Of a DNA stretch of 64,000 nucleotides, positions 4,726-50,642 are shown one piece after another. This DNA is from Lepidodermella squamata (Eukaryota; Animalia; Gastrotricha). Every line of letters begins with the position of its first letter. Position 1 is the stretch's first letter. The stretch is from NCBI GenBank assembly GCA_047495785.1, contig JBLDXI010000007.1, positions 1,054,001 through 1,118,000 on the forward strand, in the 5' to 3' direction. The position numbers and the translations under genes were made by a program. Under the pieces are notes generated by a model. The model saw only the letters and a program-made list of their open reading frames with translations. It had not been told where the DNA came from and ran no database searches.

Positions 4726-5504
4726 ATGATGGCGCCCAATCGCGCTGATTGGCTGTTCGCCGGTGATGAGACAGCTCCGTCATCACGCAAAAATCAAGCC
4801 AGATTACGCCTCAGGAATCGACTTGAGCCGGTAAGCCTAAGCCTTGCCACTTCACAAACCGCCTTAGAAGCAAACGGTACATCCTTACTCGCCGTATCTT
4901 ATGACGGAATGCACATTACCGAGTCCTTCCCAATGCCACAAAGGTCCGATGTTCCGTCATGCTCAAGGTGGAAGTACATGCCGCCCAGTGTAAGAATGCC
5001 GCGGGCTAGTAGGGTTCATTACGATGCTAATCGAGGCAATTTAATATCGTTCATGTCTTTCACCGGTGGTCACCCTGCTTATGGGCCGATACATCAAATC
5101 AACCAGCAGACTCGAGCCACAGTTAAGCGGCAGAATAATCTGTATCGGGAAAAGTCAACAGTAGGAGTTGTCGATTTTTCAAACACCCTGGATCGAGCGT
5201 TCACTTTCATAACCGCTCCAGTAGCTAATAAACCGTTGGTTTTATATTAATCTCAAGTTATTTCTGTCTAGCATTTGTTTGCAGTTCAGTTTCGCAACAT
5301 CCGCAATATATTCCGAAAAATAATGCAAACAAGCCGAAAAGCCCGTTGCCAAAACTGCGAAATGATATTCGCTTGCCGAGGCTGATTATTACAAGCGAGA
5401 GCCCGCCTGCGACTACACCATACTGGTGCTGGGAAGACCTGATGAGCCTGTACAAGGAAGATACAAGCTCAGGGCCGCCGAATACACCCACGCCCTTCTT
5501 TTGA
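4726..5504 (+). CDS. Hypothetical spliced protein convergent with LGIC-1
   Basis: 174-aa ORF plus a terminal exon after TTTGCAG reading SVSQHPQYIPK...PRLIITSESPPATTPYWCWEDLMSLY...PTPFF*. The same frame is kept in the duplicate at 8888-9100. No recognisable domain. Confidence 0.35.
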
Positions 5505-5711
5505 AGTGAAGAAAACGTTTAGAAACAACAATCAAAGCTTTATTTGTCACGTCAAAAAATTAATTTAAATGAATACGAATAAATACTGAGGATGTACAGG
5601 AGTGAAACTGATAGCAAAGATTTGTCAGAAAAACGAGACGACGTTCACAATATAGCCCTGCTCGTATTTTTCAAAAATGTCCGTCAAACCTCATTTCACA
5701 AGAGGATACGC

Positions 5712-8282
5712 TTAAATCTTGGAGATTGTCACATAGGCGCTTACATGAATGCCCACAAAGGCAACTATAGCTAGGAGGAAAGCGAAGATGTCGATGAGCC
5801 TGGCCAAGGTAATGCGTTTCCTCAGTATTCCACCGACCAATTCACTGCCTCTGTAGCAAGCTACCAGCCAAACGGTCGCCATTTGGTAAATCGTGATAGC
5901 TGCGGCGAAGAACACCAGTTGCATAATGTAGTCACCCAGTAGAGATCGATTTGCTGTCTGCGGTAGAACCCCCCTCACATCAGCCTGGGCAACGACCAGG
6001 GCTAGAAGGGACGTGATGGTGAAAGTAGGCCTTTCAGCAGTTTCAGGCAGCAATAAAAACGTCAGCAAGTTGATAGATGACAGGACAGCACTAGGCAGGG
6101 CCAAGTTAACGAGATAGTAGTCAGGAATACGTTTGATCGTGATTGAAAAATTAGCGGCATGAACGTATTCGCCCATGAATTTCCGAATCGACGTCTTTTG
6201 CCCCGCTGCTAGAACCCGCCACTCTTCAGTCTCATTGCCCTCTGCCCATTCAAAATAGATGGCTGAAAATTGGACTCGTTCAAAATTTCGAACCATTTGG
6301 AACGTAAAATCGCACTCCTGAGTGTCGAAAGGGAAATTGTCGAGATTCAGCTGGCAGTCCGACTCCAGCAGGCCTTCCCTAACCCAGTAGAAACTCAGCG
6401 TGATGTTGTCCCCTTTTTCAGGTACATCCATGTAAACAGTTAGATCTTGATCGTAACCATCAAGGTGGTAGTTAGATGTAGCGGTTGAAGTGAATCTAGC
6501 GGCAGGTAGCCAAGCTTCATCCGCAGATGTAACCTGCAGTTTCTGGCTGCTATTCCGTGACTGATAGATGTTAGTTGCCTTTTTCGAACAAGTTGTCACG
6601 TTCCATTTCGCGAACATGATGACGTCGATGTCGATCTTCTGCGCAACGTTGTCCACGCCTCCTAGCGAGTTGACAAGAAGCACGAAGGTGATAGGGTTCG
6701 GCTGGTTGTTGTTTGGTGGGAAAGCCCTCGAAGAAGCAAAATCGTCGCAATACGGCCTTATCTCGCTAAGCTTGGTTGGGTTTATGCCGAATCCAGGGAT
6801 TGTCGGAACGTATTTCTCTAACGGAGAACCATCGTAATCGGATATGTCAGCAATTGGCGATCCAGATTTGTTAGGCGGGAAAATCGCTGCTGCAGAGGAC
6901 ATTGATGCTGCTGACTCATTGCGTGAGGTTGACGTTGAAGTTTCAACTGACAAACTAACCTTGGGTGTATCAGAAGACGTATCAGAAACCGAAGGTATAG
7001 TAGTTGAATCAGAAGACGGCATTGTTGTTTGAGGAAATTGCCATGTCGTTGGCATAGGCGTTGATTCAGTCGAAGTCGAAGTTGTTGCAGCTGGCTTGTT
7101 TGTGGTCGGCGTGGTACTGGTTGACATCGGTGCAGTGGTTGATGTCGATGTCGAAGCAGGTTTCGATGTTGAAGTCGATGCAGTTGGTGATGTTGATGTT
7201 GATGTCGATGCCTTGGTCGTAGACTTGGTGCTGGTGGTCGCGGATGTTGTCGTCGTCGGAACGAACCCTCCGACAGCTGTCTTAATAGAAACGGGTGTCG
7301 CCTCAGTGTTAACAGTGACGAACGAATACAGCTTCGCCTCAACGTTCGGTGGGTCAATCTTTCCGCTGTTCTCGCCCGCGACCCCGATGACATACGGGCC
7401 ACTATTGGCGAACCCTCTTATCGGTGCCGATCTAGCCATATTAATTGAATTTCCGTTACTATTGCGCAGATCCACCTTTATTCACAAAAATGTTTAATAA
7501 TGATGTGGTGATAAGTATACTAGATACTTACTGTCAAACTGTCGTTGATTATCGTTATTGTGTATGTATGATCTCCGTATGGCAAGCTATGTAAAGGGAG
7601 AGCATTCACAGTCATCGGAAGACCGTCCCACCACACACTATCCGGGTTGACGGCAGCTGTACCGTCTCGAAAATAAACATAAGCCGTTCCATCTCTGTAA
7701 AAGCATTGAACTATCAAGCCTCTGCTAGGATGCTGCATGAACACAGCAGTTGCTTCGTCTGCATTAGGTTGAATAAATAAGTTGCATTTTCGATTCCAAG
7801 TCATATTTTACTTACAGTTTCCGAATGCTTGAAGAGATTCCGGTCGAAGAATGTAAATCAACATTCCGTCGGACTTGGAACCAACAGGGCTCGGGACGCC
7901 GAAATTAACAGTTAATTTCAAACCATTGACATTGCTAAGCATCTGTTACAAAACATAAATCCTTATCCGAGAAAGCTTTCGCTTAAATATAAGAATACTT
8001 GTTTAGAAATTAATGCATATGCAGCCGTTTCTAGTTTGTAGAAAGGAAACCCTGCGCTGCCAGCTGGAACGATTGGCAGCGTTTGGCTCACCGCAGTGTT
8101 CTTCACAAAATAATACCAATTATCGATATCTTAAAATAAATTATGCATATTTCGCTTTATTCTCAGTACGCATAAGGGTTACCTGTATTATTTCCAAAGA
8201 AACTGAACTCAGGCAAGACGACATCTGGTTTGCAACCGGGTAGAGCTAGCCAAACGATGGAGAAACTAGCGAACAGATGCAT
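5712..8282 (-). CDS. LGIC-1: Cys-loop ligand-gated ion channel with N-terminal L-type-lectin-like domain and mucin stalk (5 exons)
   Basis: Signal peptide MHLFASFSIVWLALPGC. Four in-phase GT-AG introns (e.g. 8130-8182). T/S/P stalk, Cys-loop CQLNLDNFPFDTQEC, pre-M1 IKRIPDYY, M2 ERPTFTITSLLAL, four TM helices. Confidence 0.9.
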
Positions 8283-8887
8283 ATTCAGCTTTTATTCCTT
8301 AGATAGTTGTTCGACGAGAGATGAGCTCGTCATAACAATCGTAGAGCAATGTTATTAATTTCAGCCTAAATTTAGAGTGAGATCGCGGTTTGTCGGGGGA
8401 TTTTGCATACCTGAGGCCGGATATTGCCACAATTTCACTCGCGTAGCGAATCCTGTCTTTTACGCCACATATTTTCCACTAATACCGCATAAAACCGAAA
8501 TCGCATCCTCAGAAGTTGAAGTCCTGCTTTCGCTGCTATGCATAATACATCGTAGAATCAACAACGCCTTTTCATTCGATAGGTAAATCAAGCGTCCCCG
8601 ATGTTTCCGCTCCTCCAAATTATATACACCAGCCACCTGCTCTGCTCCCTGAGTGCACCTGGGACCTCGCTGGAAGGGATTATCTGACCCTCCTGGGCAC
8701 AGGCGCTACATTCACAGAGGCTGAAGTGCGCGCACACTGGCAGAAGTCGACCGCGTTGCCGCTCGGACCTGCCTATTGCGCCAACAATTCAACGCCGCTA
8801 TTCACCTTGAGTCAAAAAGTGACTGAATAACATGATCCCCGCTTACATACTGCTGGGAAGACCTGATATGAGCCTGTTTCAAGTGAA

Positions 8888-9100
8888 GTTCAGTTTCGTA
8901 ACATCCGCAATATATTTTGAAAACGAATGCAATGCCGAGGCTGATTATAACAAGCGAGAGTCCGCCTGCGACTACAACATACTGGTGCTGGGAAGACTCG
9001 ATGAGTCTGTATAACGAGCCTACTCGCTCAGGACCGCCTGAAACGCCAAGAGGGTCATTAAAAACAACAATTGAAGGTTTATTTGTCACGTCAAACAAGT
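8888..9100 (+). repeat. Diverged duplicate of 5286-5560 (terminal exon of the hypothetical gene plus LGIC 3' flank)
   Basis: Shared blocks TGCCGAGGCTGATTAT.ACAAGCGAGAG.CCGCCTGCGACTAC and TTTATTTGTCACGTCAAA. Confidence 0.85.
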
Positions 9101-9444: not shown

Positions 9445-12400
9445 TCATTTAAATAGTATGATAGGTGGAGTCGGCAAGTCAGCAGAGACGTCGTCAGTGA
9501 AAATAGAGACGCAAGAGACACCCATAGGGTAGGCCTTGAGGTTGTCAAGGTAGCGGTACCAGATGTTTAGATCTTCGATGTAGTACTGCCAAACACCGCT
9601 GTCGAGGGTAAAACCCACCGAGTAAGTTGCCGACCAGTCAGCTCCGGATCCATCCGTCTCCTGTGCATACGCCGGCGCGTATTGCCGATTTAGGGTGTAA
9701 ACGGTCAATTGGCGCGTGTCCCAAGCGGCGGTGAGTTGCAGCCACTTGTTGGCGTCCACATAATCCGCAACAGTCACCAGCCATCTGTGGGTCTCGTTGC
9801 GCACCTCAACTCGCAAGTTCTGATTGTCCAGGAAGATCTGAATGCCTTGCAAGGCCGAACTGCGCAGTGACAACAGCGATCGGCTGAATTGTTTTAAGGA
9901 AGGCAACATGAACCAGAAGGATACGGTGAATCCATTCGGGCATTTCGAAAGATCACCTGGGCATTGCTTGTCTGAATCCATGGCGTTGCCCGTTTTCCAG
10001 TCGGACGGGTAGGTGATTTCGAAAACGGGCGTTGCGAGGGATTTCTTAAGGTAGTTGAACGGTGTTATAGAGCTTGTTTGATCTAACATCTGAGGCTGAA
10101 ACACATTGCGATATTGAGCGATTGCCGGACAGTCGTCGGTGATGAATGGTGTGACGGAGTAGTCGGTGCGGAACCAAATATCGTCGACGTACAACGGCAC
10201 AACCTTGCTCATTTCGGAGTTCGAGCAGCCGACGGTAGCTTTGGTGAACAAATACATGAGTTGCGGTTTGTGAATTGGCCCAGCTAGGCCGATAGTGATG
10301 TCGTCGGTTTGCAGTCGTCCGTTGACGTAGACCTCAAGGCCACCGGTGACATTCCAGCGGAACATCAAGTTGAACCAGACATCACTTGCCACGATGTAGA
10401 TTCTCGATCGCGACCACAGGTACGTTCCGTTCGAGACGCCAACGCCCAAGATACCCTGGTTCAGTGAAATGTAGACACCAGGCTCGCCCGGTTCTTGGCC
10501 GCCACTCGAGAAAACGTATCCGTCTGCTGTCAAGTCAACCAATTTGATCCAAATGCTGAACACGAAGCCCGAGTTACCACAAAGCGTTACGTTGGTCAAG
10601 CAAGTTCCGGCGAAATTCCCGAGGCTGACACAAGATTCGCTTGAGGCAACTGTCTTGAGCGCTCTGCCCTGGTACCGTCGATCGACGCCAAAAGATGAAT
10701 CTTGAGGCATGTCAAGTGTTCCCGGTATTATGAAGAGATCATGAGCCGGTCCGCTGAACGACCAGTAGTAATATCCAGTGATTAAATACATTGCCTCTTG
10801 TTGTGGCATACCCATCATCAGGCCAAGTTGAGCGATATTGGACATCGCAGTTGGATAGATAGCCAGTTGGTGTATCTCGAAATCTTGGTTACCCGACCCA
10901 GTGACGGTCCTGTCAATGCCGCCTACTACGAACGTGGCGTTAGCCTCAGTGGTCCCGGTCAGATAAGGAGCCGGATCTGCAGCATTTTTCACGCGAGCTG
11001 CGTACGGAGTAGTCGTCGGGACACCGTTAATCCAGCAAGTCGCCACGCCGCCATAAAGGTTGTATGAGACAGCTACGTTTACTCAGTTGTTAAGAATCTG
11101 TTCCCAGGTTGCGACAACGCCGTTAGCATCGTTGAGCGGCGTCGAGCTGCAGCCGGGTATGTCAAGACCATTGGCAACCGTCCGAATCCTGATACCACCT
11201 TTGCCAACAAAGTACTTGTCGGTAGCGAAGATGACTTGGCCAGGCTGTTGAATATTGATCTTCACCCACATGGCAACGGTAAAGTTTTTTCGCCAGTCCG
11301 AGGCGTTCATCATCACTAGTGGCGCCATAGATTCAGGCAGGTTGAAACGGGCGCTTACCGGGGTGACAGTAATGCCGTACGAGTAGCCGTATTTAGGATC
11401 AACATATTTCTGAGCAATAGCTAACCGGATGCCATACAGTGAATTTTGCCAGTTCGAAATCAACCGATATCGGTCGAACCAAATGCTCGCATTTCCGTAC
11501 CATGGATTCACAATCAAACCGAACATCTTGGGAATATCTAGCGGATCGAAGTTCTTATGGTAGACTGCCAAGGTGTCATAGGCGAAGAAGCCAGTGTGAT
11601 TCATCACTCCGTCGTTGAAAGAATTGACACCCATTAAGGCGCGATTGTCATAGCGCCAGATTGGTTTTGCGTCGGTAATGCTGTCAACTCCAACGATGTT
11701 GGCGCGAGAAGCATACGCTTTGAGAACGCCGTTGATAAAGAAATACAGACCGGTGTCGAGTGACCATGTGATTGACATGTGATACCACGTGTCTCTCGTC
11801 ACGTCCATAGCAGGAACACTCGCGCGCCACACGGTGTAGTTGCCCGTTTTGCCGTTGTTCACGTTGAAGTCACTGTACCGCGAAACTTCAGCCCAGAGAG
11901 CGCGGTTTGGAACAGAAGATGTGTCTACTTCAAGCCAGAGCGAAACACCGATACAATGTTCGTCAACATTACCAGTCGTGAAGATGTAGTGGCGACCTGG
12001 GTGTGTGATCGATTCTGCAATGTAGAAGTAGCCTCCGTACGTCGCCCCGGATGAGTCACAGTTGGCAGGGTTTGCCAAGCAGCTTGTGCTCTGATTCAAG
12101 AATATCGAATTGGAGTATGGGTCCCTAAAGCCAAGGAAGCTGTTCGTCGTATTAGCGGTCATTACGGTGTGGCCTTTTACATCGGTGTCAGCAACGTTGA
12201 TCTTGACGTATCCGGTATCTGGATACAACCACATGCCACCAACCTTGCTCCAGTAGAGTGTGCGATCACGGATGACGAAATAGTCACTGGACCAGACGTT
12301 GGTTGCGTTCCACAGAACAACGGCTTCTTTTTCGGACAATCCCAAGAATTTGTAGGTCTCGAACGGGTAGATATACGTGCGCCAAACGACGAAGTCATTC

Positions 12401-14723
12401 ACCGCTGTACCAGCGAGAGTGGATGAGAGGAAGCCATCGCTACCTATGATAATCTGGTTTGTGACAAATTTGCTTCGAGCGTCGGCGATGTTGGCTGCCA
12501 CGGCCGGTGCGGCCATAACCGTTGGAATAATCAGTTGCGGGAATTCAGGAAAAAAAGGTGTAGGCAAACCATTGATGTAAGTTTGTATTCCTAGGTCTTT
12601 GCGGTAGCTGAAAGCTAGGTTAACCCAGCGTCCGAGGAGCGGTCCGCAATCGCCTGGGAACTGAGCCACAGTCGTTCCGATCCGGATGAAAACGTGGTTG
12701 TCCTCAGTGTACAGCTCCCAAGATTTCTCAGTGCGGACGCTAGCTATCGAGCCACTCGGGGCGTATATGTTCCTCGCAATGGTGTAATGATCGTTCATTA
12801 CTCGCAGGCTAGCGGTTAATGGCATCATGACCCAGATAGACAAGCTGAAGCCTCGTGTGCACGTGTCAAGCGAGTGCGGGCAATCATCGGTGACTGAGTT
12901 ATCGGTCTTGTTTCGAACATCGACGTAGAAGTAGGAGTTCGAATTCTGGAGTTGAGCCGCGTATGTTGTCTTCAACAAGTTCGGATCGATTCCAGCTGTC
13001 GATCCCTCTGACCGAGGGTAAGACCGACCAGGGAAATCGTTTATGATCATGCCTTTGTCCGCATAGCAAGGTCCAATCGATACATTTGCAATATATGAAG
13101 TGGGCATATACGTTGCATTGCCGCTGGGAATAAAATCGCCCGGGTGGAACTTGTAGTACATGTCAGCCATGGCGTAGTACGGATTGACCGCTGGGAAATG
13201 AAATTCTCAATTATTTAGTGGACATCGGTCAGCTCTGAAGGAAAATCACGTTCTGGATTTGGGTTGACGGATTTCGCGCGATCGGGGTTAATGTTTGTCT
13301 TGGGCATAGCTTTACCTCCCAACAAATATGTTACTTCTTCGTCGCAAATACGCCAAGCCCAGAAAGCTACGTCATCAATAATTGCCGAGGTGAACTGCAA
13401 ATATGAGCTATGCAATTCGTCTTACATGGTATTTGCTCGGTGTTGCACTATTGGAAAGTGAAGTTGTTCCCCAAGGATCACCCTGGCAACCGATGTAGAT
13501 GGCAGTGGCGTTTCGCGGATTCACCGGCGTAGCCAATTGGCTGAAGACCGGGTAGGAGCCAGTTGCGCTGGTCGCAGCCGAATTCTCGATGGGTGGGATT
13601 GCGATGCAGCCGAGATCTTCGTCGGCATTGCCAGTGCTGACCTCGCACTTGCGCCCGAAAATGAACACATCAATGTAGTAGTCCTTGCTTGTAGGCGGTT
13701 TGCTTGGCAAGGCACGCTGCCAGCGGAAGCCGATGTTGGTCCAGAATGTGTTGGCGCCATCGTCAGATGGCGGCCAGATAATGCCATTGCCGTCAGTGAT
13801 AGCTACGTCCTGAATGTACTGATAGTTTACATCTGTCACAACTACTCGAATGTAGTGTTGTTGTCCATCGGATGCCACAAGCTCCAACCAACGATTGGGT
13901 ATGCGCCCGGGTCCGAGTACATCAAAGAAGGATTTTCGCTGTCGCCGTAGTCGGTTCCGGCCAAGAAGCGCACCTTATCGGGTTCCATCAGCCATGTCGA
14001 GTTGTACTTGATCCACATGGAGACAGTGAAGCCGTTGCTCTCACATTTCGATGGATTGATCATACACTTCTCTTGCCTGAACTTCTCAGGATTAGTATCG
14101 AAGTTACCGATGTAAATGCAATCTTTCTGCGTCTCGTCCGTGATTGTTGGGTCGAGATTCAGCACCACACAGTCTTCAGTGTTGCTCAGGCGCTGGCATG
14201 GCACTTGATTGGCGCAGTTATCATCGAAAAGGCCGTTGTCGAAATCGTTCCAGTAGCCATCCATCTTGCTAGATGGTACGAATAAGATGTTGTTTTGGAC
14301 TCGCGAGCACAGCCGATTGTAAGCGTCAGGGTTATACAAATCGACAGACTGGCCTTTCGTGTTTGTGTAGCTCACGGGTCCGGGCTGCAGCAACAGGTCG
14401 AAGTAGCCATCAGCTACCAACGGCGGCCATTCCTCGCATCGATTGATCCTAATTTCACGGACACAGTGCCAATGTGCGTAATATATTATATTTCAAGCCT
14501 ACTTGGATGACCCTTGAATGCTTGTTGTGCCTGTATTTTTCACTTTCACAACCTGCTTCTTGTCCGTTCTTTTCATCATGTCGGTTTTGTTGCAAGCCCA
14601 CAAAGGCGAGTAGAAGTTTTCCCCTGTATCAGCTCGGAAGTTCGACTGAGCAATGCCATCGAATGACCAATAGAAATGGGCCGTATCCGAATACAACAAG
14701 CCTGTTACACCCCAAAAAGTCAA
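9445..14723 (-). pseudogene. Disrupted, apparently 5'-truncated gene for a six-repeat LamG/pentraxin-like protein
   Basis: Repeated C-x-x-[ND]-x-x-x-C-x(2-3)-G-F-[TS]-x-S-x-W, W-x-[NH]-x(3)-W, Y-[IV]-N-G and D-D-x-x-x-W motifs. Introns at about 14449-14503, 13395-13425 and 13193-13314. Frameshift near 13870 and in-frame TGA at 11083-11085. No signal peptide found. Confidence 0.75.
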
Positions 14724-19191: not shown

Positions 19192-20589
19192 TTATTCGTT
19201 CGGTTGTTGTTCAAAACTTAACAAAAGCTGACTGATAGGAATCATCGGTAGAAATTCATCAAAATTCAAATAACTTGTAATCGAGTCAGGAAATCTCAGC
19301 GAAACTACAGCGTCAAATCTTGGCTTCAAGCCAACAGCTAAATGCCGCAATATGACCGTCCTGCAAATTGCTTGCAGCTTTCGCGGAAATTTCGACTTGA
19401 TAAAAATGATGAAACGTTCAACATTAGCTAAATCAGCTGCATCTTCGTTGTTCGCATTGAGTCGGCCGCCAAATAAAATTGCGTCCAGCGCTGCGATATC
19501 AAGCGAAGACCGGCCGCGTGATTCGATTAGAAAATCAGTGACAACCTCGGTCCGACCCCAAACTCGGATACTAAGGCGGTCGTTTCTTTCGTTTGACCTT
19601 AGGAATTTCGCAACGATTTTGAACTTCGGGAACCAGCCGACAGCAAACGGATCAGGGTACATCAAGGCGCCAGTCTTCAAAATTGGCAAGCAGCCATGGA
19701 AGAACATTTTCAGTGAGTCTAAAGCATTGCCTTCATCGACAGCATACGTATTAGCAGCTGTTTCGAAGGAGGCAAACATAGCTGAGATCAACCCGCCGGA
19801 CATTGCCTTAGACAGCACAAAATCAGGGGTTGATTCGATGATTTTCCCAGCGACTTCTTCGTCTAATTTCGATATGAAAGTCGCGCTAAAAACAGCAGAG
19901 CCATATGCGATTGGTCTAACAAGATCTGCTCCTTTTTCAATTAAAATTTTCGCAATTTTGCCATGCTTCAGCCTTTTTTCACGGTCAGTCCTTAGAGCAT
20001 TTTCATCCACGGCGTAACTTCGGATGACATTTGAGAAAACAATATCCAAATTCCTGATTCGGCCGAATTTGTTGAACAAAATCGGCAGAGCTTCGTCGAA
20101 ATGAATCGAAACCGCCAAATCGAGCAGCGATTGATGAATACATTTAGGAATTATGGCGAAATTATCCGAAATTTTGTTCAAGGCCGAATCGAGTACGGAA
20201 GATTTTAAAGAATTTGTAGCACACCAAAGTAAAATTTCGATGTTAGCCAGTTGATTACTGGCACCGATATCGACTAGCTCAGCGATGATTTCGAACATTT
20301 TGTTCAGGTCGTAGTCGACAATTTGCCACGGGAAGTTGTCGAACCAAACACCGTGGCCGAAATGAAGATCCGGATCTACCAGACTGCCTCTTTTGATGCA
20401 GGGTGTTAGCATTGTTTTGATGGGTTGTTGCTCGTCCGATGGTTCTTGCTGTAGCTCGTAGTTTTCAATGATTTTCGCTGCGATTTCATCAGCGGCCCTG
20501 ACGAGTAATTCGACATGGCCCTCGGTGTAAAATGGGCATAGAACGCAAGGATCGGCTTGGCAGTGGTAAGATGCATGAATGGAACTCAT
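19192..20589 (-). CDS. Intronless SOCS-box protein with degenerate ankyrin-like repeats (ASB-like)
   Basis: C-terminal PRKLQAICRTVILRHL...LRFPDSITSYLNF is a SOCS box. KIAKILIEKGADL is ankyrin-like. Confidence 0.75.
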   Translation of the reverse strand: MSSIHASYHCQADPCVLCPFYTEGHVELLVRAADEIAAKIIENYELQQEPSDEQQPIKTMLTPCIKRGSLVDPDLHFGHGVWFDNFPWQIVDYDLNKMFEIIAELVDIGASNQLANIEILLWCATNSLKSSVLDSALNKISDNFAIIPKCIHQSLLDLAVSIHFDEALPILFNKFGRIRNLDIVFSNVIRSYAVDENALRTDREKRLKHGKIAKILIEKGADLVRPIAYGSAVFSATFISKLDEEVAGKIIESTPDFVLSKAMSGGLISAMFASFETAANTYAVDEGNALDSLKMFFHGCLPILKTGALMYPDPFAVGWFPKFKIVAKFLRSNERNDRLSIRVWGRTEVVTDFLIESRGRSSLDIAALDAILFGGRLNANNEDAADLANVERFIIFIKSKFPRKLQAICRTVILRHLAVGLKPRFDAVVSLRFPDSITSYLNFDEFLPMIPISQLLLSFEQQPNE

Positions 20590-21798
20590 GCATGAAGCGG
20601 AAAATTAATTTTGAAAATTGTAGTAAGCCCAGCTTAAAATAGAAAGTTGCAAGTTACTTGAGCCGAGTTTCTCTTTCGAATTTCACAAGTTAAGCAAACA
20701 TCGGTGTATCATCTGGCTGTTACATGGAACACTCTCAGACTTCCTTACGAAACCAACAGTTCTTTTGTATTATTTTCTAAATTATCCATATGAGAAAATA
20801 CCTTGGAAACATTCTTTGAGGAATTTAATAAGGGTCCAAATATTCGCCAATAAAAATGAGGTTCGAGCACTAAATTTAAGCGTCATGGCACTACATTTTT
20901 CATATTCTTGGCAATTTCGGCGTGTTAGTTTTTTGATCGATGCTGATGCCCTCCCTGAACCTAGGATTCGTTATTTCAGCTACCTGTCGCCCTAACCTAC
21001 GCAGAAAATGTATGGATGTTGGGTTCCAAGACGGCTGATATCGGAAAAATCACTGATTTGTAAAATCGATACTTGGAATCGATATCGGCTCTGCAGGCTG
21101 AAGTATAACCCACAATCTGACCGCTCATAGCGCAAAATACGCGTAATATGAGGATCAGTTTAGTTAGTATTTTCCAACGCCGTACTATTTTACGTCACTC
21201 TTTCTTCTGGAAATTAGGCGATATAAAAGCGTATGATCTCCTTCCGGTGCGATTTAAGGCTGATGAAAAAAACAAGGTGAAGAAAATCAGAACTCTCATT
21301 TCTTGAGTTTGTGAATGAACATGAGGTAGCAGTTGCGAGCGCACGCAGAATTTCGGAATTTCGCTAGAATGTCAGATTATATGTGATTACGAAGTCACCC
21401 GGTTAGATAAAACAAGGGTTTCCGCTTACTTTTCCTAATATCTTTCCTAGCATTTTTTGCATTTCACAAAAAAGCAATTATCGGGATTAAACATCGGCGA
21501 GTCGAGTTATCATTAACTACAAGAATATAGCCGTTTTCTCGCTATTCAACCGTGACCGAACTATTAATCCTGCGCTTCTAATGAAAGTCGAGAAATTGTC
21601 TAAGGAAAGCCAAACCAATCAAAATAAAATGGATGCTGTGCCTATTTTAAACTCCATTGGGCCTATTTTCAGGTTAAAAGATCGGATTTATCCTAGTGTT
21701 AGGATCCTCTATTTTCAAACATCAGTCAAAATGTTCGAAATTCCCCTTCTAGGCTTTGAAAATTTTAAAATTAATGGGATGGCTGTCTTTAATTGAAG

Positions 21799-23103
21799 AT
21801 GAATGAATCAGTCGACCAGGATTATAATTGCTTCGCCGTTTACTCAAGCTCATCGGCTATAAATCAATCATGGATTTGCCCGAAAGAGTACGCCGGAACA
21901 ATCGACGAGTGCCTGTTCCTTTACCTACAACAATTCGGCCGCGTAGCAGGGCGATGCGACCTTTTCGAGGCTAGCCTTTCAATATTGTTCTGCATCCTCG
22001 TCTACCCATGCAATTTTATTGCACTTCGAAATTTTCGAGCGAAAAAAGTTCGGCCAGAATTTATGTTACTTTGCTCAGCCTTGGCTCTCAGCAATTGCCT
22101 CCACGCGACTGTTGCGATATTTGGATCTCTTCACAGGTATAATTCTCAAAAATTAGAGAAAAAATTGATTAAAATTTCAAAATTAGGTTTTCAAATTACG
22201 GTACGAAATACGCTTGTATTATGATAGTAATAATCGGGACATCAATCAAAAATTCATCCTTCTACATATTCGCGCTAAGAAGCATCGAGCGAAATTTGTG
22301 TTTAAAAAGTCTTCAATTCACGCCGAAATCTCGTCAAAATTCGTCGAATTCTCTCAGCGTCAATTCAAGGTCCAATCGATATCGTGGTCTAGTGATTTCT
22401 CTATGCCTAGTGTTTGCCATGTCGACTTCAGCAATATGCCTTCAAATGTTCAGTTACGGAGCTTTGAGGTCGATTTCAGTGGAACTACCTGGTTATGATC
22501 AACCGGTCGATGTTTGTGTTTCAATCACCTCGCTGCAATTTTTCAGCGGAACTGCGATGAGCATTGCTTATGGCAGTTTTACCCTAGGATTCCCGATTAT
22601 TCTCACAATTTTCAATTACTGGTGAGATTTAGGATAATTTAACAAAAAATTCGATAATTTTTCTGATTTTTCAAAGTTCCGTATGGGTTCAAGTTCGACA
22701 CTAGGATTCCCGATTATTCTCACAATTTTCAATTACTGGTGAGATTTAGGATAATTTAACAAAAAATTCGATAATTTTTCTGATTTTTCAAAGTTCCGTA
22801 TGGGTTCAAGTTCGACACTTGCATTCAATGATGGAAAGCGCCCCGAATTCTCCGATGGCTCTGAAAATAGAAAAACGCGAGACGAGATTGGCGACTTTGA
22901 TGACAATTTCTGTCGCTGAATTCATCATTTGCCTACTGCCGCTAATAGCATCAGTGGCGACAATCGAACGTGATGCAGAGACTAAGCAGTATCGAGCTCA
23001 GTCGAGCCTGATAGTCTACGCTTGTTTGATACAAACGATTGAATCTGCGTTGAACCCATTCTGGCCGAGTCTTGTCCTAGCTCGGCGGTCAAGGAGACCT
23101 TGA
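21799..23103 (+). CDS. Orphan class A-like GPCR G1 (3 exons, with an internal 117-bp duplication)
   Basis: Exons 21799-22136, 22187-22621, 22794-23103. TM3 ALRSIERN, TM7 ESALNPFW. Confidence 0.8.
22584..22817 (+). repeat. Perfect 2 x 117-bp tandem duplication spanning intron 2 of G1
   Basis: CTAGGATTCCC...GTTCGACA occurs at 22584-22700 and again at 22701-22817. Confidence 0.95.
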
Positions 23104-24539
23104 AAAGCAACTGTTATTTGGCAAATGAATTTAATCCATTCGGTCTATAAATATCAAAGTCCAGACTTTGCTAATCCATGCAGCTATCAGCGAGACTGAC
23201 CGTTGCTGCTAATACCGGGTATTAACTGCTTCAGACTTCGATGAAAACGAGAACTTTGGGTTTAACCTAATTCCTAATGTTATCGATTTTATCATATCAA
23301 TCTGAATTTATTTTGAGAATGCGCAAACAGTAAAATTGAATTTGGAAAAAAATCAGGTCTCAGAACTAAGGGATATTTCGTCGTATCCCACGATTGAAAA
23401 TTATTTCAGCTAGAAATATTGGATACGCGGCATCCAGGTGATTTCAGACCGAAAAATAGATAACCTAGCCAACTTCAGACTCAAGTGGCATGAATATGTG
23501 ATCTCAATTTCTCCAGTTTTTTGAGATTTTATCAACTAATTTCGTTGTTTTCAGCCACAAGTTGATTTATCGATTGGAAATTGACTGAGCAGCCTGTTTC
23601 AATATTATCGTAATAGCAATTGGCAATAGCAATGAGAATCCACTTTGCATTTTTCTTCCGCATCAAGTCACGGCAGGGTTCAAATTTTGTTATGTTATAT
23701 TTAAAGTTATCGGAATTTTAAACAGCGGAATGATCACAATGTGCTCTCTGTTGTTTAGTATTAAAATTAAAATTCACTACAGACATATTATTCCATTAGT
23801 GAGGAATTTTTTCGAATTTTACACATTATTTCCCATGCATTTATACGTTAAATTCCCAATTTTCCGAGCAAATTTTTAACGAATGAATGAAATATCGTTC
23901 TCTAAGATTTTACCTATGTTTTAATTTAATCGGACTGAATTTTCAAAATATCCCGCAAGTTCGAGCCTTGTATTAGCCTATCGTCGGAGGCCATTAAAAG
24001 TAGGTAGGTATGAGTTCGTGATAATGATGATGGGGATGACTTGATTAGCTTGAAGGTGTCTCTTATCGCAAACTGCATAGCAATATATTCTAAAGCTGAT
24101 TTTCACGCGCAAGTGATGATGGCGATGTAGGAGCGTCTTAGTCGAAGCCTGCTGATTTCCATAGACTCAGAAAATATAAAAATTGTCATCGTGCGGCTCT
24201 TATTACCCGCGAGTCTGAGTCAGAAAAAACAGCCGGAAAAGCGCGTAGTATAGGGTATTAGGCCACCGAAAACCGCGTAGATCACGACTTCCTAAACATA
24301 AAAAATTGATATGAGGCTCGGCGCTGTTCACGCATGAATGGAAAATAGCATTTTCAAGCCAAATCGCGCATTTAGAAACCTTTTAGAAACTAAGAATTCG
24401 CGGGCGCCGCAACATCAAAATTATTTATTAGATTGAAGCTTTTTTGCCAACAACAGAACTTTTTCAGTTTTTTAACTCTGAAAAATCAAGGGACTCTGTC
24501 CTGAATTAAGACCTTAGCAACTCGTCTATAGCTTTTTCA

Positions 24540-26622
24540 ATGGGCCACTGCTTCGAACTATCAGCCGAAGAGTCAGCAGTGAATAAATCTTGGATCTGCC
24601 CGCCTGAATTCGAGGATTCAGACCACCCATGCGTCTTCCTCTACCTCCATCAACTCAACCGGAGCAGCAACTATTGCGGATACATAGAAGCAGCTATGGT
24701 CATTTTTGTTTGCCTCCTGAATTATCCTTGCAATATACTGGCGCTGAGAAATTTCAGCCGGCGGAAAGTCAGTGAGGATTTCATGCTTCTGGCGAGATCT
24801 CTCGTGTGCTGCAATATGCTATACGGAACATTTGGAATCATTTGTGGCTTTCAAAGGTGAATAACTAAAAATATTGAAAAAAATCTGGAATTTTCTGAAA
24901 TATAGTAATGATAAATTGTGAGACATTTGCTTCCTCCCACCGATTTTACCTCCATTGAAAAGATTCTCAGAATTATTAAAATATTTTCAAAAATTTAAAT
25001 TTTGAAGGAAGTTTAAATATAAAGAAATTTTACTGATTTTAAATAATAACAAAAAAGTGAAATAAATTGCGAAAAGCTTTCGCCAAATGAAATGGAACTA
25101 TAGCCGATGAGCTCTTCAATTTAGAGACATTTTTTACCCCATATTTGAAAAATAATTAAAAAATGAAATTAATGCTAGAAAAGTTAGAGCTAATCAATTG
25201 TAATGAAGCCTTTTAATTTTATAATCTATATTTTTCAGAATCGAATGGCTGACCCACAGCAATTTTATTACATGCGAAGCGGCTATTGTTTTCGCAAGCT
25301 CAATAATGGCGACGTCGTTCTACGTATTCGCCTTCATCAGCATCCAGCGAAATTTAAGCGTCCGACTCGACAGCAAGTGCGAATCCAGACGATATTGGAC
25401 TTTCCTCATTGGCGTCTTCACGGCTTTCATAGTCATTACATCAGCATATTCCATTCAATTGCTAGGCTATGGAGCTGTTCAATCCTTTGAGGTGGACGTC
25501 AATCCAGCAATAGGTCCTGTCAGTGTTTGCGTATCTGTACCATCTCGGGAGGTTTTCAAAGGTCTAGCTTTCAGCACTGGTTTCGCTACGCTGACCCTGT
25601 TTCTTCCTCTAGGCATCACGGTTGCCAATTATATGTAAGTCTTTGATCATCATGATTACACTGGCGAAACCTGAATCTTTACAGATCTTTGTGGCGTTAT
25701 GTCAGACAAGTGACTAACGGCTTATTTTCGAAAGAAATGAAAGCTGAAGCCATTAGCAATCGAATCCGGAAGCGTGAAAAGTGGCTTGCCGCTCTAATGA
25801 CGATCTCGGTTGTCGAGTTTGTCCTAGCCTTATTGCCAATGATCGTGACTTTCTCCCTAGTGCTAAGGTGACCTCGCGGCCTGGCGATACTTTCTGGAAT
25901 TATCGCTCATAATGTTGAGTTTGAGGCGTAGGCATTGCTCAGGTAAATCCCACAAGGAACTTGGAAATGATCAAAGTATTAATTTTCAATGATAAGGAAA
26001 AAGGAATTGTTGAGCTCACAGGTAATTGAAGACGACTATCAGTAAGGGTAGAACTAAGAAAATCAATCCAAAAGTCGCGCCAAAGAGGAATCCATTGAAA
26101 TACTGCCGGCTTTGCAGGTTGACGCAAGCATAAATAGGACGTTCTCCGTCGCGGACTCCAGAAATGTGAACAGCCAGGGTCTGTGTTGATCCATTCAATG
26201 TCAGCTGGGAAATGTAGATTGCAGTAACCGAGCTAATAACGAAGGCTAGAGCTGCAACCACCACCCAGAATCTTTCCGAGTAGCCCATTAAAAAGCAAGT
26301 TTGTGGAGGTGATCGATATCGAACACTGATGTTGCGTTCGATGCTGATAAGCCCGAAAATGTAGAAAGAACAAGTGCAGAAGATTCCACTGGAAGGTAAA
26401 ACTATTTCAAAAAATCAGGAAATTATCATCCCAGTTCGAAAAAAATCGCTGCAGTGAATCACGAAGCTGCGACACGAGGATTCAGTCGAGTGTGATGGCT
26501 TACATCACATTATTTCTCACCCAGAAGTATAGATAAATCTAGATTCACTATGGTCAATTGTTCTCAAGGTATGGCATCCTCTTAAAAAGTGGATCAAGAG
26601 TTGCATCACTTCAAAATCATGA
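24540..26622 (+). pseudogene. GPCR G2, exon 3 interrupted by an inverted fragment of G4
   Basis: Exons 1-2 intact (AFISIQRN). Exon 3 breaks at about 25861 and resumes near 26447 (IAAVNHEAAT / RIQSSVMAYITLFLT / SLWSIVLK) with further lesions. Confidence 0.7.
25862..26408 (-). repeat. Inverted partial copy of GPCR G4 (29571-30106)
   Basis: The same 90-aa ORF (MGYSERFWVV...) appears at 26016-26288(-) and 29691-29963(+). G4 intron 2 is included. Confidence 0.95.
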
Positions 26623-27200
26623 TCAATTTCGTGGTGCCACCCATCCTATTAGTCTCGATTAGTTATTGTGACACGTGTTCCTTTGATAATTGGTAGTTGA
26701 TTAATTGGCTACTGAGAAAGTTGCAGGATGACTTAACGTCTAATAGGACATGTCTGAGCATGAAATACTCCTAACAAAGATTCCGTTTACACCTGGCAAG
26801 ATTAATGTAATATCCGGACGTGGTCCCAGTTAGGAATTTATCCATTCCCGCCTTTGCAAATGCAGTGACAATGTCAGTCCCGCGTCCACCTAGTGTGATC
26901 TGCCTACGGACTACTTGATGAGTAAACGCGTCTAGCAATCAGTCGTGCCAGGATGATTAGGGCTAACTAACGCTTGACTGATTTCGCATCACCTGGCATT
27001 AGCGGCGATTTCGGAGGATATGCGCATATCTCTAACCGGAACCGGAAATTGAACTGACCTAAATATCACAAATCCCAATCAATGACGGCAGACATCATCA
27101 TTATCGTAATTATCATATAAACACGGCACTGTATATATTGAGGACCATTTTGGCGATTGGTAATAATCCTAATCAACACATAAAAGCAAACGTTTAAGCT

Positions 27201-28487
27201 ATGGAATCCTGCATGAACTTCGAAGCTGATGAAACCGCTATCAATCAGTCGTGGGTCTGCCGTCGGAAATGAATGGGACATTCGATGAATGTGTCTTTCT
27301 TTACGAACAACAATTTAACCGACCTAACCCAAGCTGTGGATACATCGAAGCAGCAATAATCATTGTTATCAGTATTTGCGTGTTTCCCTGCAACGTCATA
27401 GCTGTTCGAAATTTCCAGAAAAGAAAGGTATCGCCCGAATTCATGCTTCTCATCACCGCGTTAGCTGGCAGTAATATGGGATATGCGATTATCGGCATTT
27501 TTCGAGGGATTTACAGGTAAGTCATTGCTAATTGATTCCACCACTCAAGTGCACGGAATATTTAATAGGGCAACTGATTGGTTGGATGCATTTGCTTGCG
27601 ACATTGTCATGCCACTTAGCGGAACTACCTGTACAATCTCCTTTTACATCTTCGCCCTAATCAGCATTGAGCGTAACTTGAGTGTTAGATCGGCGACAGC
27701 TTTCAAACCAGCTCAGTTGGTTATCAAACTCCAGTCCAACTTCCGACTTAGAGGCCAATCACCTCGTTACTGGTGGCTAGCCCGGGTCATTGGTCGTAAT
27801 CATCACCTTAGTAACGACCATCTACTTTACTCAAATGGTCACAAATGGATCAGTGCAAACAATGCCAGTTCTGATTTCGGGTGTTAAGGCTGGAACTGAG
27901 CCGATTAAAGTTTGCGTGGCCCTTCAAGCCCAACAGTACTTCACCGGGGCCGTTTCTGGAGTTGTTTTCAGCTTGTTTGTCCTGATAGTACCTCTAGTGG
28001 TAACAGTCACTAATTATTGGTAAATATCTGCCTAGAGGAATCCATTTTGATAACGTTCTTCTGTTACAGCAACTTATGGCTTTACGTGCGAAACATGCAT
28101 TCAAGTTCATCTTTGATTGCTGACTCTGGTTACACCTGTGAGAGCCATCTCAAGAAGCAGAGACAACGCGAGATGATCTTAGCTATCCTCATGATATGCT
28201 CCGTCGCTCAGTTTGTCGTCAGCATAACTCCGATGACAATAGCTGTTGGGCTGATTCACGAGGACGGCATTTCAGGACGGCGGCGCTATCAGTCCTCGCT
28301 CATGTTCTACGCGACGCTTTTTGAAAGCATCGATTCGGCGCTGAATCCGTTTTGGTCGAGCTTTGTGCGTCTGCGGCCGGCAAATAAGGACTTTTCTGTG
28401 AAATACGGCGGTACAAGTTCGGATTCTGGATCAAAAGCTAGAACTATAGGTGTGAATACGACGAAGGTTTCAGAGATTTCGCACTGA
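27201..28487 (+). pseudogene. GPCR G3 with two single-base frameshifts (pseudogene or consensus error)
   Basis: MESCMNFEADETAINQSWVC then one C missing near 27261; one extra C near 27782. Otherwise a full 3-exon structure with ALISIERN and DSALNPFW. Confidence 0.75.
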
Positions 28488-29142
28488 TTGAGCATGAAGT
28501 TGACAAATTGCCCTATTTTCCAATTTTGATGTTGATGGCTTCGAATAATAAGGATCGAAGATAATTACGGTGCAGATTTCATGTTTAGTGGCTGAAAACA
28601 CACCATTTATAGAAACGTTTACATGGTAACCTGGTCAAAGTAAATCAGGAGGCAGGGTTCGTTTGTATTCATCTAATCAAATCAAATCACCAGTCGACAT
28701 GTTTTTTTCAACTTGTCACATGCTATCGCGTGTTCGATAGAAGAAATCACTCTGACTAATATCTTGGCTAATGTGAGATGTCCTGTTTGTAATTGGGACA
28801 AACAGTTGTCGCCTAAATTGAATAAAAATCAGTTGTCGACCTCTTAAATGCAAAACGGAAGTGACTCGGGCACTGAAACTAGATGACCTTTATTTTCAGC
28901 AGTTGTAGCATTTTCTGCGAAAAATTAGTGGAGATTAGTCTTACTAAAGTTACTCCTTCCTCAAACCGCCTGTTAACAGAACTCAAGGTCCTCTAGTGGG
29001 AAATTCGAACAATGTTTTTGTCACAAAATGACAGCTTCCCATCACAAGAATGTGTCTAGACCCCGAGGAAAAGGTAATATGCCCATCAACATTATGTAAT
29101 TATTTGTAGACATTAGAATCAGAAACACTACTTTAACATCTT

Positions 29143-30428
29143 ATGGAATCTTGTTTCTCGTTTCGAGCTGAGGAAAGTGCTGTGAATGAGTCTTGGGTTT
29201 GCCCTCCAGAATTCGCTGGCACTATAGACGAGTGCTTATTCCTGTACGCTCAGCAGTTCAATCGAAAAACAGCCTCGTGCGGATATTTGGAAGCTGGCCT
29301 TCTCATCGCCATCAGCTTATGCATTTTCCCAGCTAATATCATAGCGATTAAAAATTTCAGTAAGCGAAAAGTCAGCCCGGAATTCATGCTTCTTATCACA
29401 GCCCTGGCAATAACCAACATGGGATATGGAGTCAACGGAATCTTCCGAGGGATATACAGGTATGGGTGAAACAATTTCAATAAAATAAAATTCGAATTTG
29501 GAATTGTGATAGTTTTATATGAACTCTTCATTATTTCAGGGCGACTGAATGGCTGGACGCTTTTGCTTGCGAAATAGTTTTACCTTCCAGTGGAATCTTC
29601 TGCACTTGTTCTTTCTACATTTTCGGGCTTATCAGCATCGAACGCAACATCAGTGTTCGATATCGATCACCTCCACAAACTTGCTTTTTAATGGGCTACT
29701 CGGAAAGATTCTGGGTGGTGGTTGCAGCTCTAGCCTTCGTTATTAGCTCGGTTACTGCAATCTACATTTCCCAGCTGACATTGAATGGATCAACACAGAC
29801 CCTGGCTGTTCACATTTCTGGAGTCCGCGACGGAGAACGTCCTATTTATGCTTGCGTCAACCTGCAAAGCCGGCAGTATTTCAATGGATTCCTCTTTGGC
29901 GCGACTTTTGGATTGATTTTCTTAGTTCTACCCTTACTGATAGTCGTCTTCAATTACCTGTGAGCTCAACATTACTTTTTTATAATTGAAAATTAATATT
30001 TGACATTTCCAAGTTCCTTGTGGATTTACCTGCGCAAGCTACGCTCAAACTCAACATTACTGAGCGATAATTCCAGAAAGTATCGCAGGCGCGAGGTCAC
30101 CTTAGCCACGCTTATGGCTATATCTGTTGCTCAATTCATCATCTGCATCACACCTGTCACACTTGCAGTGGGTGTAATCAACGGAGAAATCGAGTCTGGA
30201 ATACAACGCTATCACTCTTCATTGATAGCTTATACGGCTCTTTTCGCGAGCATTGACTCAGTGCTAAACCCATTCTGGTCGAGTTTCGTGAGACTCAAGG
30301 CTAACGCGAATATCCCGAGATCTGTTGAGCTCAGCAGCAAGAAAGCAGCTAGTGATTCATCACCTTTTCCGAAGTCACTCAGTCAGAGATTTTTAGATAA
30401 TGATTCGCAGAAATTTGGCGAACTTTAA
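29143..30428 (+). CDS. Orphan class A-like GPCR G4 (intact, 3 exons)
   Basis: In-phase splicing 29459/29540 and at about 29959/30014. GLISIERN, DSVLNPFW. Confidence 0.85.
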
Positions 30429-31023
30429 TGAGACAAGATCGATTATTGGGAAATAAACTCCTACGTGGCTGTCCGTGTGTCCGCTGTTTTGTTGAAAAGT
30501 TATTTTTACAACGCACGTGACCGCGTGGCCCATTCGATGACCTTCGATGTTTTAAATGAGGACCAACTTGTATAATGGATAAATAAGAAGAAATTCAAAT
30601 TACTGTTGTGAAGTCAGAGACCCTTCCAATTTAAATTTATTTTGCTTATTCGCCATGAATATCGTCATTTCAGAAGCAGCCATATGTTTTCTGGCATCAA
30701 CATTCTTTTCAACCTAGATTCGGGAACACGGGATCATCCCCGACAGTTCAATACGCAGTAACACATTAGTTGGTTCCGGTTAACAAGAGTCATATATTAT
30801 GTGCGGTCTTTGAACATACGTCTGATTTACTCCTAATGTATTGAGCATGAAGTGTTATTGACATCTGGATATTGCGCGGAAATTCTAAAGGTAGTATTGT
30901 GTTTCCAGAGCTTGCAGACGTCCACCACGGAAAGCGTCGACATCTCGTGAGCGTGATTGCGCAGAATTTTTAGCGGGCACGTGCATTTTTTCTTGGACAT
31001 TTCAGTCACTTTCAGTTGTTTTC

Positions 31024-33351: not shown

Positions 33352-34475
33352 AACTCAGGGAAAACAATCTCCAAAATGCAGAAAATTCTCTTGAATAAAA
33401 TGTATAAAAAAACGCGATATATTGAGTAGTGTAAACAAGGAGTTATCATTTTTTAACAATGGCAATATTTTCTCTTTTCTAACGAAACTCTAAACGAAAA
33501 CACTTTATAGTTGTTCGGATCTCTTCCCAGCGGCCAATGTTTCGAACATGTTTGGAGGCGTGCCATATGGCTGGTCGATTCCCCCTAAAAAGTGCTATTT
33601 GGTGAACTACTAAGCTTCCCCAAGTTCATCAATCTCTCTTTCGCACCACTTCGATATCCTCACCAGTTAAGGAATAAGGGATAATTAGTGTGCTCCGCCA
33701 AGAAATGGTCCGCTGAACTCAATGACGTGTTCCGGTCACGTGCCTGTGGAAAATGTAATCACTCACATGGGTGAACTGCGATGGCATAGAGAGTAGCCTT
33801 GACAACGGAGAATTGATCACGCGACTCGGAAGCTAACTACAAGAAAAAAAGGAATCGATGAGATTGCGATTTGCTCTGCGAATGCGAATGCGATTCGTTT
33901 CCCACGTGAGATACAAAAATAAACGAGTTTATGGGGAAAGTATAAATCATAAGGGAACCCTTGTCAATCAGGCCGTCATAATAAACAAAAATCATCGAAA
34001 AATACGCTATCGAAAATTGAATCAGTCCTAGTAAAATTGGCTTTTCTAGTACTGGATTTATATATTATCTCTACATCAGACATCATGAGGTTAGTGTTTA
34101 TCAAGGGAAAACATTTTGCGATCTCATTAAAAGGATCTCATCGATTAATCTACTACTTATAGTCTAGTCTTCCCGCAGTGAAAAACCAGACATGTACTTG
34201 ATTAATCAGAAACGGATATTAAGAAAGAGCGGTTTTGTGTCACCAACATAATCGCCGGTCACTTAATAGATTTTGTTCGAGATTTCAACCGACATTTTCA
34301 CGTAATTTAATGCGACATTTTCTCGCTAATTTCCCTCGCACTCAAGCCAACTAAAATACTCCTAATTGAGCCCAGTTTTTCGTGTAAAATTTCTTAATGT
34401 AACAAAATCGACTATTTAAAGATTATTTTATCTCATATTGCTTAAATGAACGTAATAATTTTGTAGGACTGACAA

Positions 34476-49621: not shown

Positions 49622-50252
49622 TCCTCATTTATGAGACCAACAGCAATTGTCATTGGAATGATGCTGACAACAAACTGAGCAACTGAACAGATCATCAAAG
49701 TTGCGAGGAACGTCTCGCGTGATATATTCCGATAATCCAGATCACGATTATAATATCAATCGAGGTAGTATATTTTTTGCGGGGTCATTGTCACCGTTTT
49801 TTATTCGTCGCACTTAAACCCCGCCGTCAATAGTTATTAGACGAAAAAAGGATGAGCCAATAAAGCTTATTGCCCAATTCAACGGAGCGCGGAAACGGGA
49901 GTGGCCTCTACTGCACTATTACCTCTTACTAAAATTCTAGAAATCGATCGATGGATCAGAAGGCTATAAAAACTGTTAATTTCACTTTTTCTACTACCAT
50001 AACAAAAAGTGAATAAATATCAATATGGAGTCGCAATGCAAGGCCCACAGTTTGTCACTGGTTTGAGCACGGGTGTTTTGTTTGGAATTATCGCCTTAAT
50101 TGTGCCCTTAACGATAACAGTAATAAGTTACAGGTATGGACATATTTTTCAATCAAAAATTGTTGGGATAATTTTTGAAAGTTTTCCAAGCAATCTGTGG
50201 CTCTATGTAAGACATTTGCATATAATAAGCTCTTTTCTATCGACAAATCCTT
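49622..50252 (+). pseudogene. Rearranged GPCR relic G6
   Basis: Inverted exon-3 piece (49622-49720), then a copy of the G7 upstream region, then ATGGAGTC (50025) fused directly to late exon 2, ending early in exon 3. Confidence 0.85.
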
Positions 50253-50642
50253 TTTCAGAAAAATCGATAAGCCTTTTCGGCGACACTATGGGGTCTCGCG
50301 TCTTTTGAGGTGGATGGTGGGGTAGAGGTCTGAAAATTCAAAACTCTCGAGAAAACTAAGTAAGAAAATTCAGGATCCCAAGAATGGTCCATCTTCAAGT
50401 CAACACACGTTTTACCATTTGCCGGAAAATTCGGAAAATACGCCAAACCCCACAACCAAACTTTTAACCTTTCAACCATCAATCTAACTAATAAAGCACA
50501 ACCGTTCGAAAGATATCATGATTTTATTACAGCATATCAATCAACCATGTTCACTGCTTTTCTGAGATGCTCAAAGAATCATATGGGAATAAATTATCAT
50601 TGAAGTTATTAATAAGTTCTTTCAAACGAATCGATATAGGTT

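Follow-up and report, generated by a model that had tools for sequence, protein, structure and literature searches.

Animal Cys-loop receptors are textbook two-domain proteins, and so far it is bacterial members of the superfamily, such as DeCLIC, for which accessory N-terminal domains have been discussed. The gene described here points to an animal clade in which the channel carries an additional extracellular head. The clade came to light in a 64,000-nucleotide stretch of the gastrotrich Lepidodermella squamata (contig JBLDXI010000007.1, positions 1,054,001 to 1,118,000; hereafter the window), where a gene that we call copy 1 encodes, in order, a hydrophobic signal peptide, a head of about 250 residues, a mucin-like stalk and a complete Cys-loop channel. 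The fusion of head, stalk and channel in one gene is supported by the evidence below. We are fairly confident in the full reading, namely a four-part protein whose head is most likely a very divergent ConA-like β-sandwich of the L-type-lectin kind and would serve in anchoring or capture. A preliminary description of the locus, made from the sequence alone, held that an earlier report of this architecture would count against it; our full-text literature search found no eukaryotic Cys-loop receptor whose lectin-like or LamG head is carried on a mucin-like stalk, and Jaiteh et al. (2016) mention no such headed receptor.

Copy 1 is an intact five-exon animal gene for one membrane protein of 782 residues (Table 1). 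The list of open reading frames (ORFs) contains a 587-codon ORF at 5712–7475 on the minus strand, with small ORFs upstream. Joining the exons by script yields a frame of 2349 nt, comprising 782 codons and the stop, and the introns, of 53, 56, 57 and 56 nt, all run from GT to AG. This open frame with canonical splice sites bears out the preliminary proposal that four small 5′ exons splice into a signal peptide, head, stalk and channel. The motifs SDGMLIYIL, RGLIVQCFY, HTYTITIINDSLT and PYVIGVAGEN, listed there in this order, are found in the same order in the spliced protein, and HTYTITIINDSLT together with the following VDL straddles the junction between exons 4 and 5. The last ~70 residues of the head, the stalk and the entire channel occupy a single exon, so that part of the fusion is independent of any inference about splicing.

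Reads lend further support to the gene model. Contigs of a public run, X1, cover positions ~5585–8288 with zero depth beyond, and one of them skips exactly 7476–7531 (56 nt, joint 7475/7532), which is bounded by GT..AG on the minus strand and corresponds to the exon 4/exon 5 junction. Contigs of a second, DNA-like run are continuous across the same interval. Copy 1 is thus probably transcribed. Two points weigh against this support: the junction is the only one of the four documented by reads, at low depth, and X1 was labelled RNA by guess. The exon joining proposed in the preliminary description is accordingly documented for exons 4 and 5, and the other three junctions have no read documentation.

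The layout recurs twice in the window. Copy 2 has first four exons identical in length (100, 131, 127 and 227 nt) and phase to those of copy 1, with introns of other lengths (60, 59, 60 and 54 nt). Between the two copies the head aligns over 245 codons without an insertion or deletion, with a synonymous divergence (dS) of 0.56 and a ratio of non-synonymous to synonymous divergence (dN/dS, ω) of 0.40; for the channel ω is 0.12. These values and the indel-free head indicate that both parts are coding and under purifying selection. dS of the head is about twice that of the channel (0.25), and gene conversion of the 3′ half or separate histories of the two halves are possible sources of this contrast. 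Copy 3 is more divergent, its channel 44–48% identical and its stalk reduced to ~20 residues. Its head enters exon 5 in a frame closed by a stop codon; the frame with the conserved GPWILGIGG strand holds an in-frame TGA, and a loss just before M2 breaks the frame again. Because of the in-frame stop in the head (within 38340–38400) and the frameshift before M2 (within 37290–37310), copy 3 is probably a pseudogene, barring assembly error at these sites. The recurrence of the layout noted earlier is therefore complete in copy 2, whereas copy 3 keeps the domain order and exon phases without an intact frame.

The channel is a member of the Cys-loop (pentameric ligand-gated) superfamily. Pfam Neur_chan_LBD matches it with 46.7 bits against a curated cutoff of 26 (E 3.3e-12), while Neur_chan_memb falls under its cutoff (21.6 against 28.1 bits), the match being shortened by the very short M3–M4 loop. 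The Cys-loop is canonical, C569-QLNLDNFPFDTQE-C583, a C-x13-C around FPFD, and is invariant in alignment A2, which holds 50 sequences of relatives and formed the basis of an AlphaFold2 (AF2) model of the channel. This model (predicted local distance difference test, pLDDT, 90.5; predicted template-modelling score, pTM, 0.83) consists of a β-sandwich and four helices at model residues 228–250, 257–279, 288–318 and 326–362, with ~7 residues between M3 and M4. Together with the Neur_chan_LBD match, it agrees with the earlier assignment of a complete channel. In a Foldseek comparison with the PDB the model is equally near the α7 nicotinic acetylcholine receptor (nAChR) and GlyR (template-modelling (TM) score 0.7–0.8, 14–18% identity). 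By sequence, the best PDB match is nAChR α6 (1.8e-16), next come other nicotinic and 5-HT3 subunits, and Alpo4, an orphan nAChR-like receptor, is absent among the 60 best matches listed. A further pair of cysteines outside the Cys-loop, C438 and C491 (window ~6749 and 6590), is nearly invariant in A2 and may form an additional disulfide of the extracellular domain.

Two features of the channel bear on its function. A glutamate at −1′ is a classical mark of cation-selective Cys-loop members. In copy 1 the pre-M2 A-E-R aligns to the G-E-K of α6, which places Glu at −1′ and Arg at 0′, and M2 carries 9′ Leu and 17′ Asp; from the −1′ Glu and 9′ Leu the channel looks cation-selective. The nicotinic aromatic box, tested as loop A Tyr, loop B Trp and loop C Tyr-Cys-Cys-Tyr, is absent, the corresponding positions in the α6 alignment being Thr, Val, Lys, Met-Gly and His. 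This makes a classical amine ligand unlikely, and by this binding-site test the channel is placed outside the nicotinic subfamily.

Between head and channel, copy 1 has a stalk of 143 residues with 28% Thr, 26% Ser and 10% Pro (64% in sum), in keeping with the Thr/Ser/Pro-rich stalk of the preliminary description. The stalk of copy 2 spans 131 residues and contains 67% Ser, Thr and Pro. Both are long, low-complexity, Ser/Thr/Pro-rich stretches, as in mucins, and are presumably O-glycosylated and extended.

The head–stalk–channel layout is not unique to this genome, and unannotated relatives occur in metagenome assemblies and the AlphaFold DB. A HMMER pass with the channel over 1.84 billion representatives returned 3244 channels, the best 39% identical. 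Heads of ~230–560 residues precede the channel in seven of the ten best matches, and the relatives that were looked up all come from ENA metagenome assemblies. Thr/Ser-rich linkers follow the heads of P0004, P0005, P0006, P0008, P0010, P0011, P0015 and P0016. Pfam recognises Laminin_G_3 in P0026 (6e-16) and, with weak matches, in P0004 and P0005; P0003 has an EGF domain. In P0003–P0005, P0008–P0011, P0015, P0016 and P0026 the channel is 28–34% identical and the heads are ConA-like or of unknown type; the head families of different relatives can barely be aligned with each other. A single uninterrupted ORF of P0011 contains most of the head together with the stalk and the channel, which independently supports the reality of such fusions in the clade. 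Among AlphaFold DB cluster representatives matching the channel model (15–19% identity), some have long N-terminal extensions, for example A0A8B6FA76 ('WSC domain-containing protein (Fragment)') and K1RK09; lower-ranked long matches are mostly tandem channel domains. Together, these proteins describe a clade of invertebrate channels, absent from the literature searched, with interchangeable ConA-like heads, L-lectin-like or Laminin_G_3 and sometimes with EGF, usually on Thr/Ser-rich stalks.

Several searches added nothing to this picture. The contigs around P0002, the closest channel relative, show no recognisable head upstream. Scans of JGI metagenomes gave only distant channels, at most 32% identical over full-length-type matches, and the gap was not bridged. 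A word-index protein search found nothing with the whole exon 5 protein, because its words were probably drawn from the low-complexity stalk, and returned one weak match with the channel alone; with the P0011 head it found only P0011 itself. On the contigs of P0161 a second Neur_chan_LBD gene lies ~4.5 kb downstream (L005 11237–11761, L006 11112–11761), after two long unannotated ORFs, and the relatives may be arranged in tandem arrays.

The fold of the head is approached indirectly, through P0011 and other relatives. The nearest neighbours of its head by language-model features are L-type-lectin clusters only (score 0.92), and the same holds for the complete head of P0003 (score 0.93; 171–173 shared features). 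When an AF2 model of the P0011 head was searched with Foldseek, ERGIC-53, VIP36, LMAN1 and legume lectins ranked first in the PDB and among Swiss-Prot models (E 6e-5 to 3e-3, TM up to 0.58). VIA-align superimposes the model on L-type lectins with Z 10.6–11.7 over 159–170 of 195 residues at 10–17% identity. On the strength of these matches, the longest of which are to L-type lectins, the P0011 head is likely a ConA-like sandwich, with the L-type class spanning most of it. A PDB sequence search with the same head gave no match. Upstream of P0159, an exon carries a W-x-x-x-G-x-A ... I-L-T ... G-A-L-W pattern, which we take to resemble the N-terminal strands of L-type lectins.

The window head can be tied to these relatives by profile and by gene structure. 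In hmmsearch, the P0159 head obtains 9.5 bits with a profile built from the three window copies, a score that 5 of 2000 shuffles reach; in the opposite direction 2 of 2000 do so. Copy 1 obtains 8.6 bits with a profile built from the heads of four relatives, which none of 2000 shuffles attains. Local hhalign of the window head with the P0011/P0159 head is collinear over 202 columns (P=0.003); global hhalign on the thin profiles gives no signal, and no profile links the window head to those of P0003, P0009 or P0161. A MAFFT alignment, A1, placed the exon fragments badly against P0011 and was not used for folding. The exon structures agree. A phase-0 intron lies 26 residues ahead of the Gly of S-D-G in both copy 1 and copy 2; the distance is the same in P0159 if one of its two possible splice readings is taken, and 28–29 residues for P0161 and copy 3. 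Intron 1 is of phase 1 and lies three to four residues ahead of the Trp in both copy 1 and P0159. Given the profile tests, the hhalign result and the agreeing intron positions and phases, the window head and the P0011/P0159 head are probably homologous, and by way of P0011 we lean clearly towards an L-type-lectin-like fold for the head of copy 1.

A number of results weigh against this assignment. The exon pieces E2–E5 of copy 1 give no relevant Pfam match, and none to a lectin model up to E 10, and no Pfam lectin match is found in the heads of P0011, P0016, P0003 and P0009. The P0011 model, for which AF2 was given a single sequence, is of low confidence (pLDDT 46.6, pTM 0.49), and galectins reach Z 11.3 against it, as high as the L-type lectins, though over only ~130 residues. 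Copies 2 and 3 are not significant against the four-relative profile, and taken alone the sequence similarity of the window head to that of P0011 is marginal. The sugar-binding xDG motif reads S-D-G in copy 1, S-A-G in copy 2 and S-P-G in copy 3, with Asp in copy 1 only. In addition, an atlas search with exon 4 alone returned nothing relevant, with low recognition, and no metal- and sugar-binding loop of the FDxxxN type is recognisable by eye in the head. The L-type-lectin reading of the preliminary description is therefore supported indirectly, by the fold and features of P0011, the collinear alignment and the introns, and fails on the Pfam match and on the Asp in copies 2 and 3. We regard the head as lectin-like in fold at best, outside the Pfam L-type lectin families.

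The same observations can be read differently. The head could be a β-rich domain of another or new fold, whether galectin-like, LamG/pentraxin-like or unrelated, with its four motifs arising by chance. We consider this rather unlikely: it would account for the missing Pfam matches, the uninformative exon 4 search, the galectin scores of the proxy model and a profile link that reaches only P ~0.002–0.003 with P0011 and fails with P0003, P0009 and P0161, but it leaves the collinear alignment to P0159 and the introns common to both genes unexplained, and it is with L-type lectins that the proxy aligns structurally over its greatest length; nor is the head similar to the Laminin_G_3 domains of the window. 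That exons 1–4 make up a separate gene for a small secreted protein, with the channel gene starting inside exon 5, is barely credible. Read documentation of a single junction leaves room for it, but that junction is precisely the one between exons 4 and 5. Exon 5 also has no signal peptide of its own and starts mid-domain with the last strands of the head, and the layout is kept in copies 2 and 3 and, mostly in a single ORF, in P0011. Decay of the whole family, with copies 1 and 2 functionless, is suggested by the stop and frameshift of copy 3 and is nonetheless highly unlikely, as the frames of copies 1 and 2 are intact, ω is low in the channel and 0.40 in the head, and X1 covers copy 1 in a transcript-like manner.

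A further alternative concerns what the head does. If the heads were true lectins that gate the channel, binding to a glycan, biofilm or surface would open the pore, chemically or by a pull on the stalk. The resemblance to L-type lectins through P0011 fits this idea, as do the loss of the orthosteric aromatic box, which makes a classical transmitter unlikely, a head ω ~3.5 times that of the channel, as a specificity module might show, and the swapping of heads among relatives. It is improbable all the same: an allosteric signal would not readily pass along a disordered stalk of 130–145 residues, copy 2 is intact otherwise but has lost the key Asp, and neither the exon pieces nor the relatives' heads match a lectin hidden Markov model (HMM). 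The broader notion of animal Cys-loop channels opened, also mechanically, by heads that bind glycans or surfaces outside the cell, and thus of contact chemo-mechanoreceptors derived from a neurotransmitter-receptor scaffold whose specificity is set by swappable ConA-like heads, seems to us quite improbable.

We instead favour anchoring, clustering or ligand capture by the head as likelier than direct gating, because a flexible stalk of ~140 residues is a poor conduit for allostery, and coupling from head to pore is unlikely for the same reason. In a pentamer, five heads would stand tens of nanometres away from the channel on the outer side; both the formation of pentamers and the extracellular binding by the head are predictions. 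We picture the head as a binding module that evolves fast and would serve to anchor or cluster the channel at an extracellular partner, a glycan or something else, or to capture that partner. The pore would be opened at the extracellular domain by a separate ligand, and direct gating by the head through the flexible stalk would be the less likely option. The ω of 0.40 in the head against 0.12 in the channel, and the differing head types among relatives, fit a specificity module. If the clade is real, it provides a natural setting in which to study how a binding module outside the cell couples to, or positions, a pentameric channel, and both copies are compact genes that lend themselves to cloning.

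Table 1. Window positions of the copy 1 exons and domains and of the two paralogues
Feature	Position	Strand	Remarks
Copy 1 exon 1	8282–8183	−	ATG, signal peptide (residues 1–17), start of head; ends in phase 1
Copy 1 exon 2	8129–7999	−	first head strands, NWYYFVKN...ALISKQ; phase-0 intron follows
Copy 1 exon 3	7942–7816	−	SDGMLIYIL motif; stretch best matched to the P0159 head
Copy 1 exon 4	7758–7532	−	RGLIVQCFY and HTYTITIINDSLT motifs
Copy 1 exon 5, whole	7475–5712	−	end of head, stalk and channel in one ORF
Exon 5, head part	7475–7257	−	last head strands: VDL..., PYVIGVAGEN, KLYSFVTVN
Stalk	7256–6828	−	residues 269–411, mucin-like
Linker and channel extracellular domain	6827–6123	−	Cys-loop at 6312–6356
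Transmembrane domain M1–M4 and stop codon	6122–5712	−	M2 at ~5967–6035
AATAAA	5539–5544	−	~170 nt past the copy 1 stop; within a motif common to copies 1 and 2
Copy 2	18325–15780	−	intact paralogue of 770 residues; exons 18325–18226, 18165–18035, 17975–17849, 17788–17562, 17507–15780
Copy 3	39628–36995	−	divergent; exon phases and domain order as in copy 1

The window holds further genes around the three copies. An Rfam search of the window gave no match. The interval from copy 1 to copy 2 contains four long minus-strand ORFs at 9445–14420, with 533, 695, 159 and 192 residues. Laminin_G_3 (ConA-like) domains are repeated in two of these (E 1e-15 and 1e-12), and the four may belong to one large gene for a LamG-repeat protein. 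The head as a copy of these neighbouring LamG genes was considered and ruled out on the lack of similarity to their domains. A short ORF with a hydrophobic segment, …SSQHQY.VVAGGLSLVIISLG…, occurs in two copies on the minus strand, one downstream of copy 1 (5258–5491) and one downstream of the LamG ORFs (8802–9098), and may represent a transmembrane-anchor exon or part of a duplicated unit. A GC-rich island at 50001–52600 (−; 56% against ~42% elsewhere) encodes another Laminin_G_3 protein (3e-15), whose tail is rich in Pro and Thr, and a protein that is rich in Cys and has a chitin-binding CBM_14 domain (2e-5).

A row of ORFs at 21793–36356 (+) resembles pieces of several rhodopsin-type receptors, with one weak 7tm_1 match (3.8e-4), and an intronless ORF of 775 residues at 31024–33351 (+) has an ANF_receptor domain followed by a long hydrophobic tail. 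At 19192–20589 (−) an intronless ORF of 465 residues ends in a SOCS box (3.6e-5). Two ORFs of 137 residues, at 59078–59491 (−) and 63300–63713 (+), are near-identical with two differences, and their opposite strands point to an inverted duplication; a nuclear-receptor zinc-finger ORF (zf-C4, 5.8e-8; 59864–60355) lies between them.

Copy 1 can be set beside several known proteins. ERGIC-53/LMAN1, VIP36/LMAN2, Emp46/47 and the legume lectins have motifs in the same order as the copy 1 head. These L-type lectins are cargo receptors or seed proteins, however, and not channel appendages as the head is here; the head also differs from them in giving no HMM match and in not clearly keeping the sugar and Ca2+ ligands. 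DeCLIC is not known to have a Cys-loop. Copy 1, by contrast, is a Cys-loop receptor, and its head sits on a long, probably flexible mucin-like stalk. DeCLIC and other prokaryotic pentameric channels (PMC12664993; 10.1101/2025.02.24.640012) resemble copy 1 in having an accessory extracellular domain ahead of the ligand-binding domain, but DeCLIC is a periplasmic protein of bacteria with a Ca2+-binding N-terminal domain, whereas copy 1 is eukaryotic. Lophotrochozoans have large expansions of orphan receptors according to PMC10338036, and headed channels, if real, could account for part of such expansions in invertebrates. The lophotrochozoan orphan Alpo4 of the same source is, like copy 1, a divergent channel of the cationic nAChR/5-HT3 type that belongs to an invertebrate gene expansion and has no known ligand; both lack the vicinal cysteines of loop C. 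Alpo4 keeps its aromatic cage and an intracellular domain of 100 residues, where copy 1 has lost the cage and joins M3 to M4 by ~7 residues. Finally, no extra head is described for Alpo4 in the passages of PMC10338036 consulted, whereas the channel of copy 1 is preceded by a head and a stalk.

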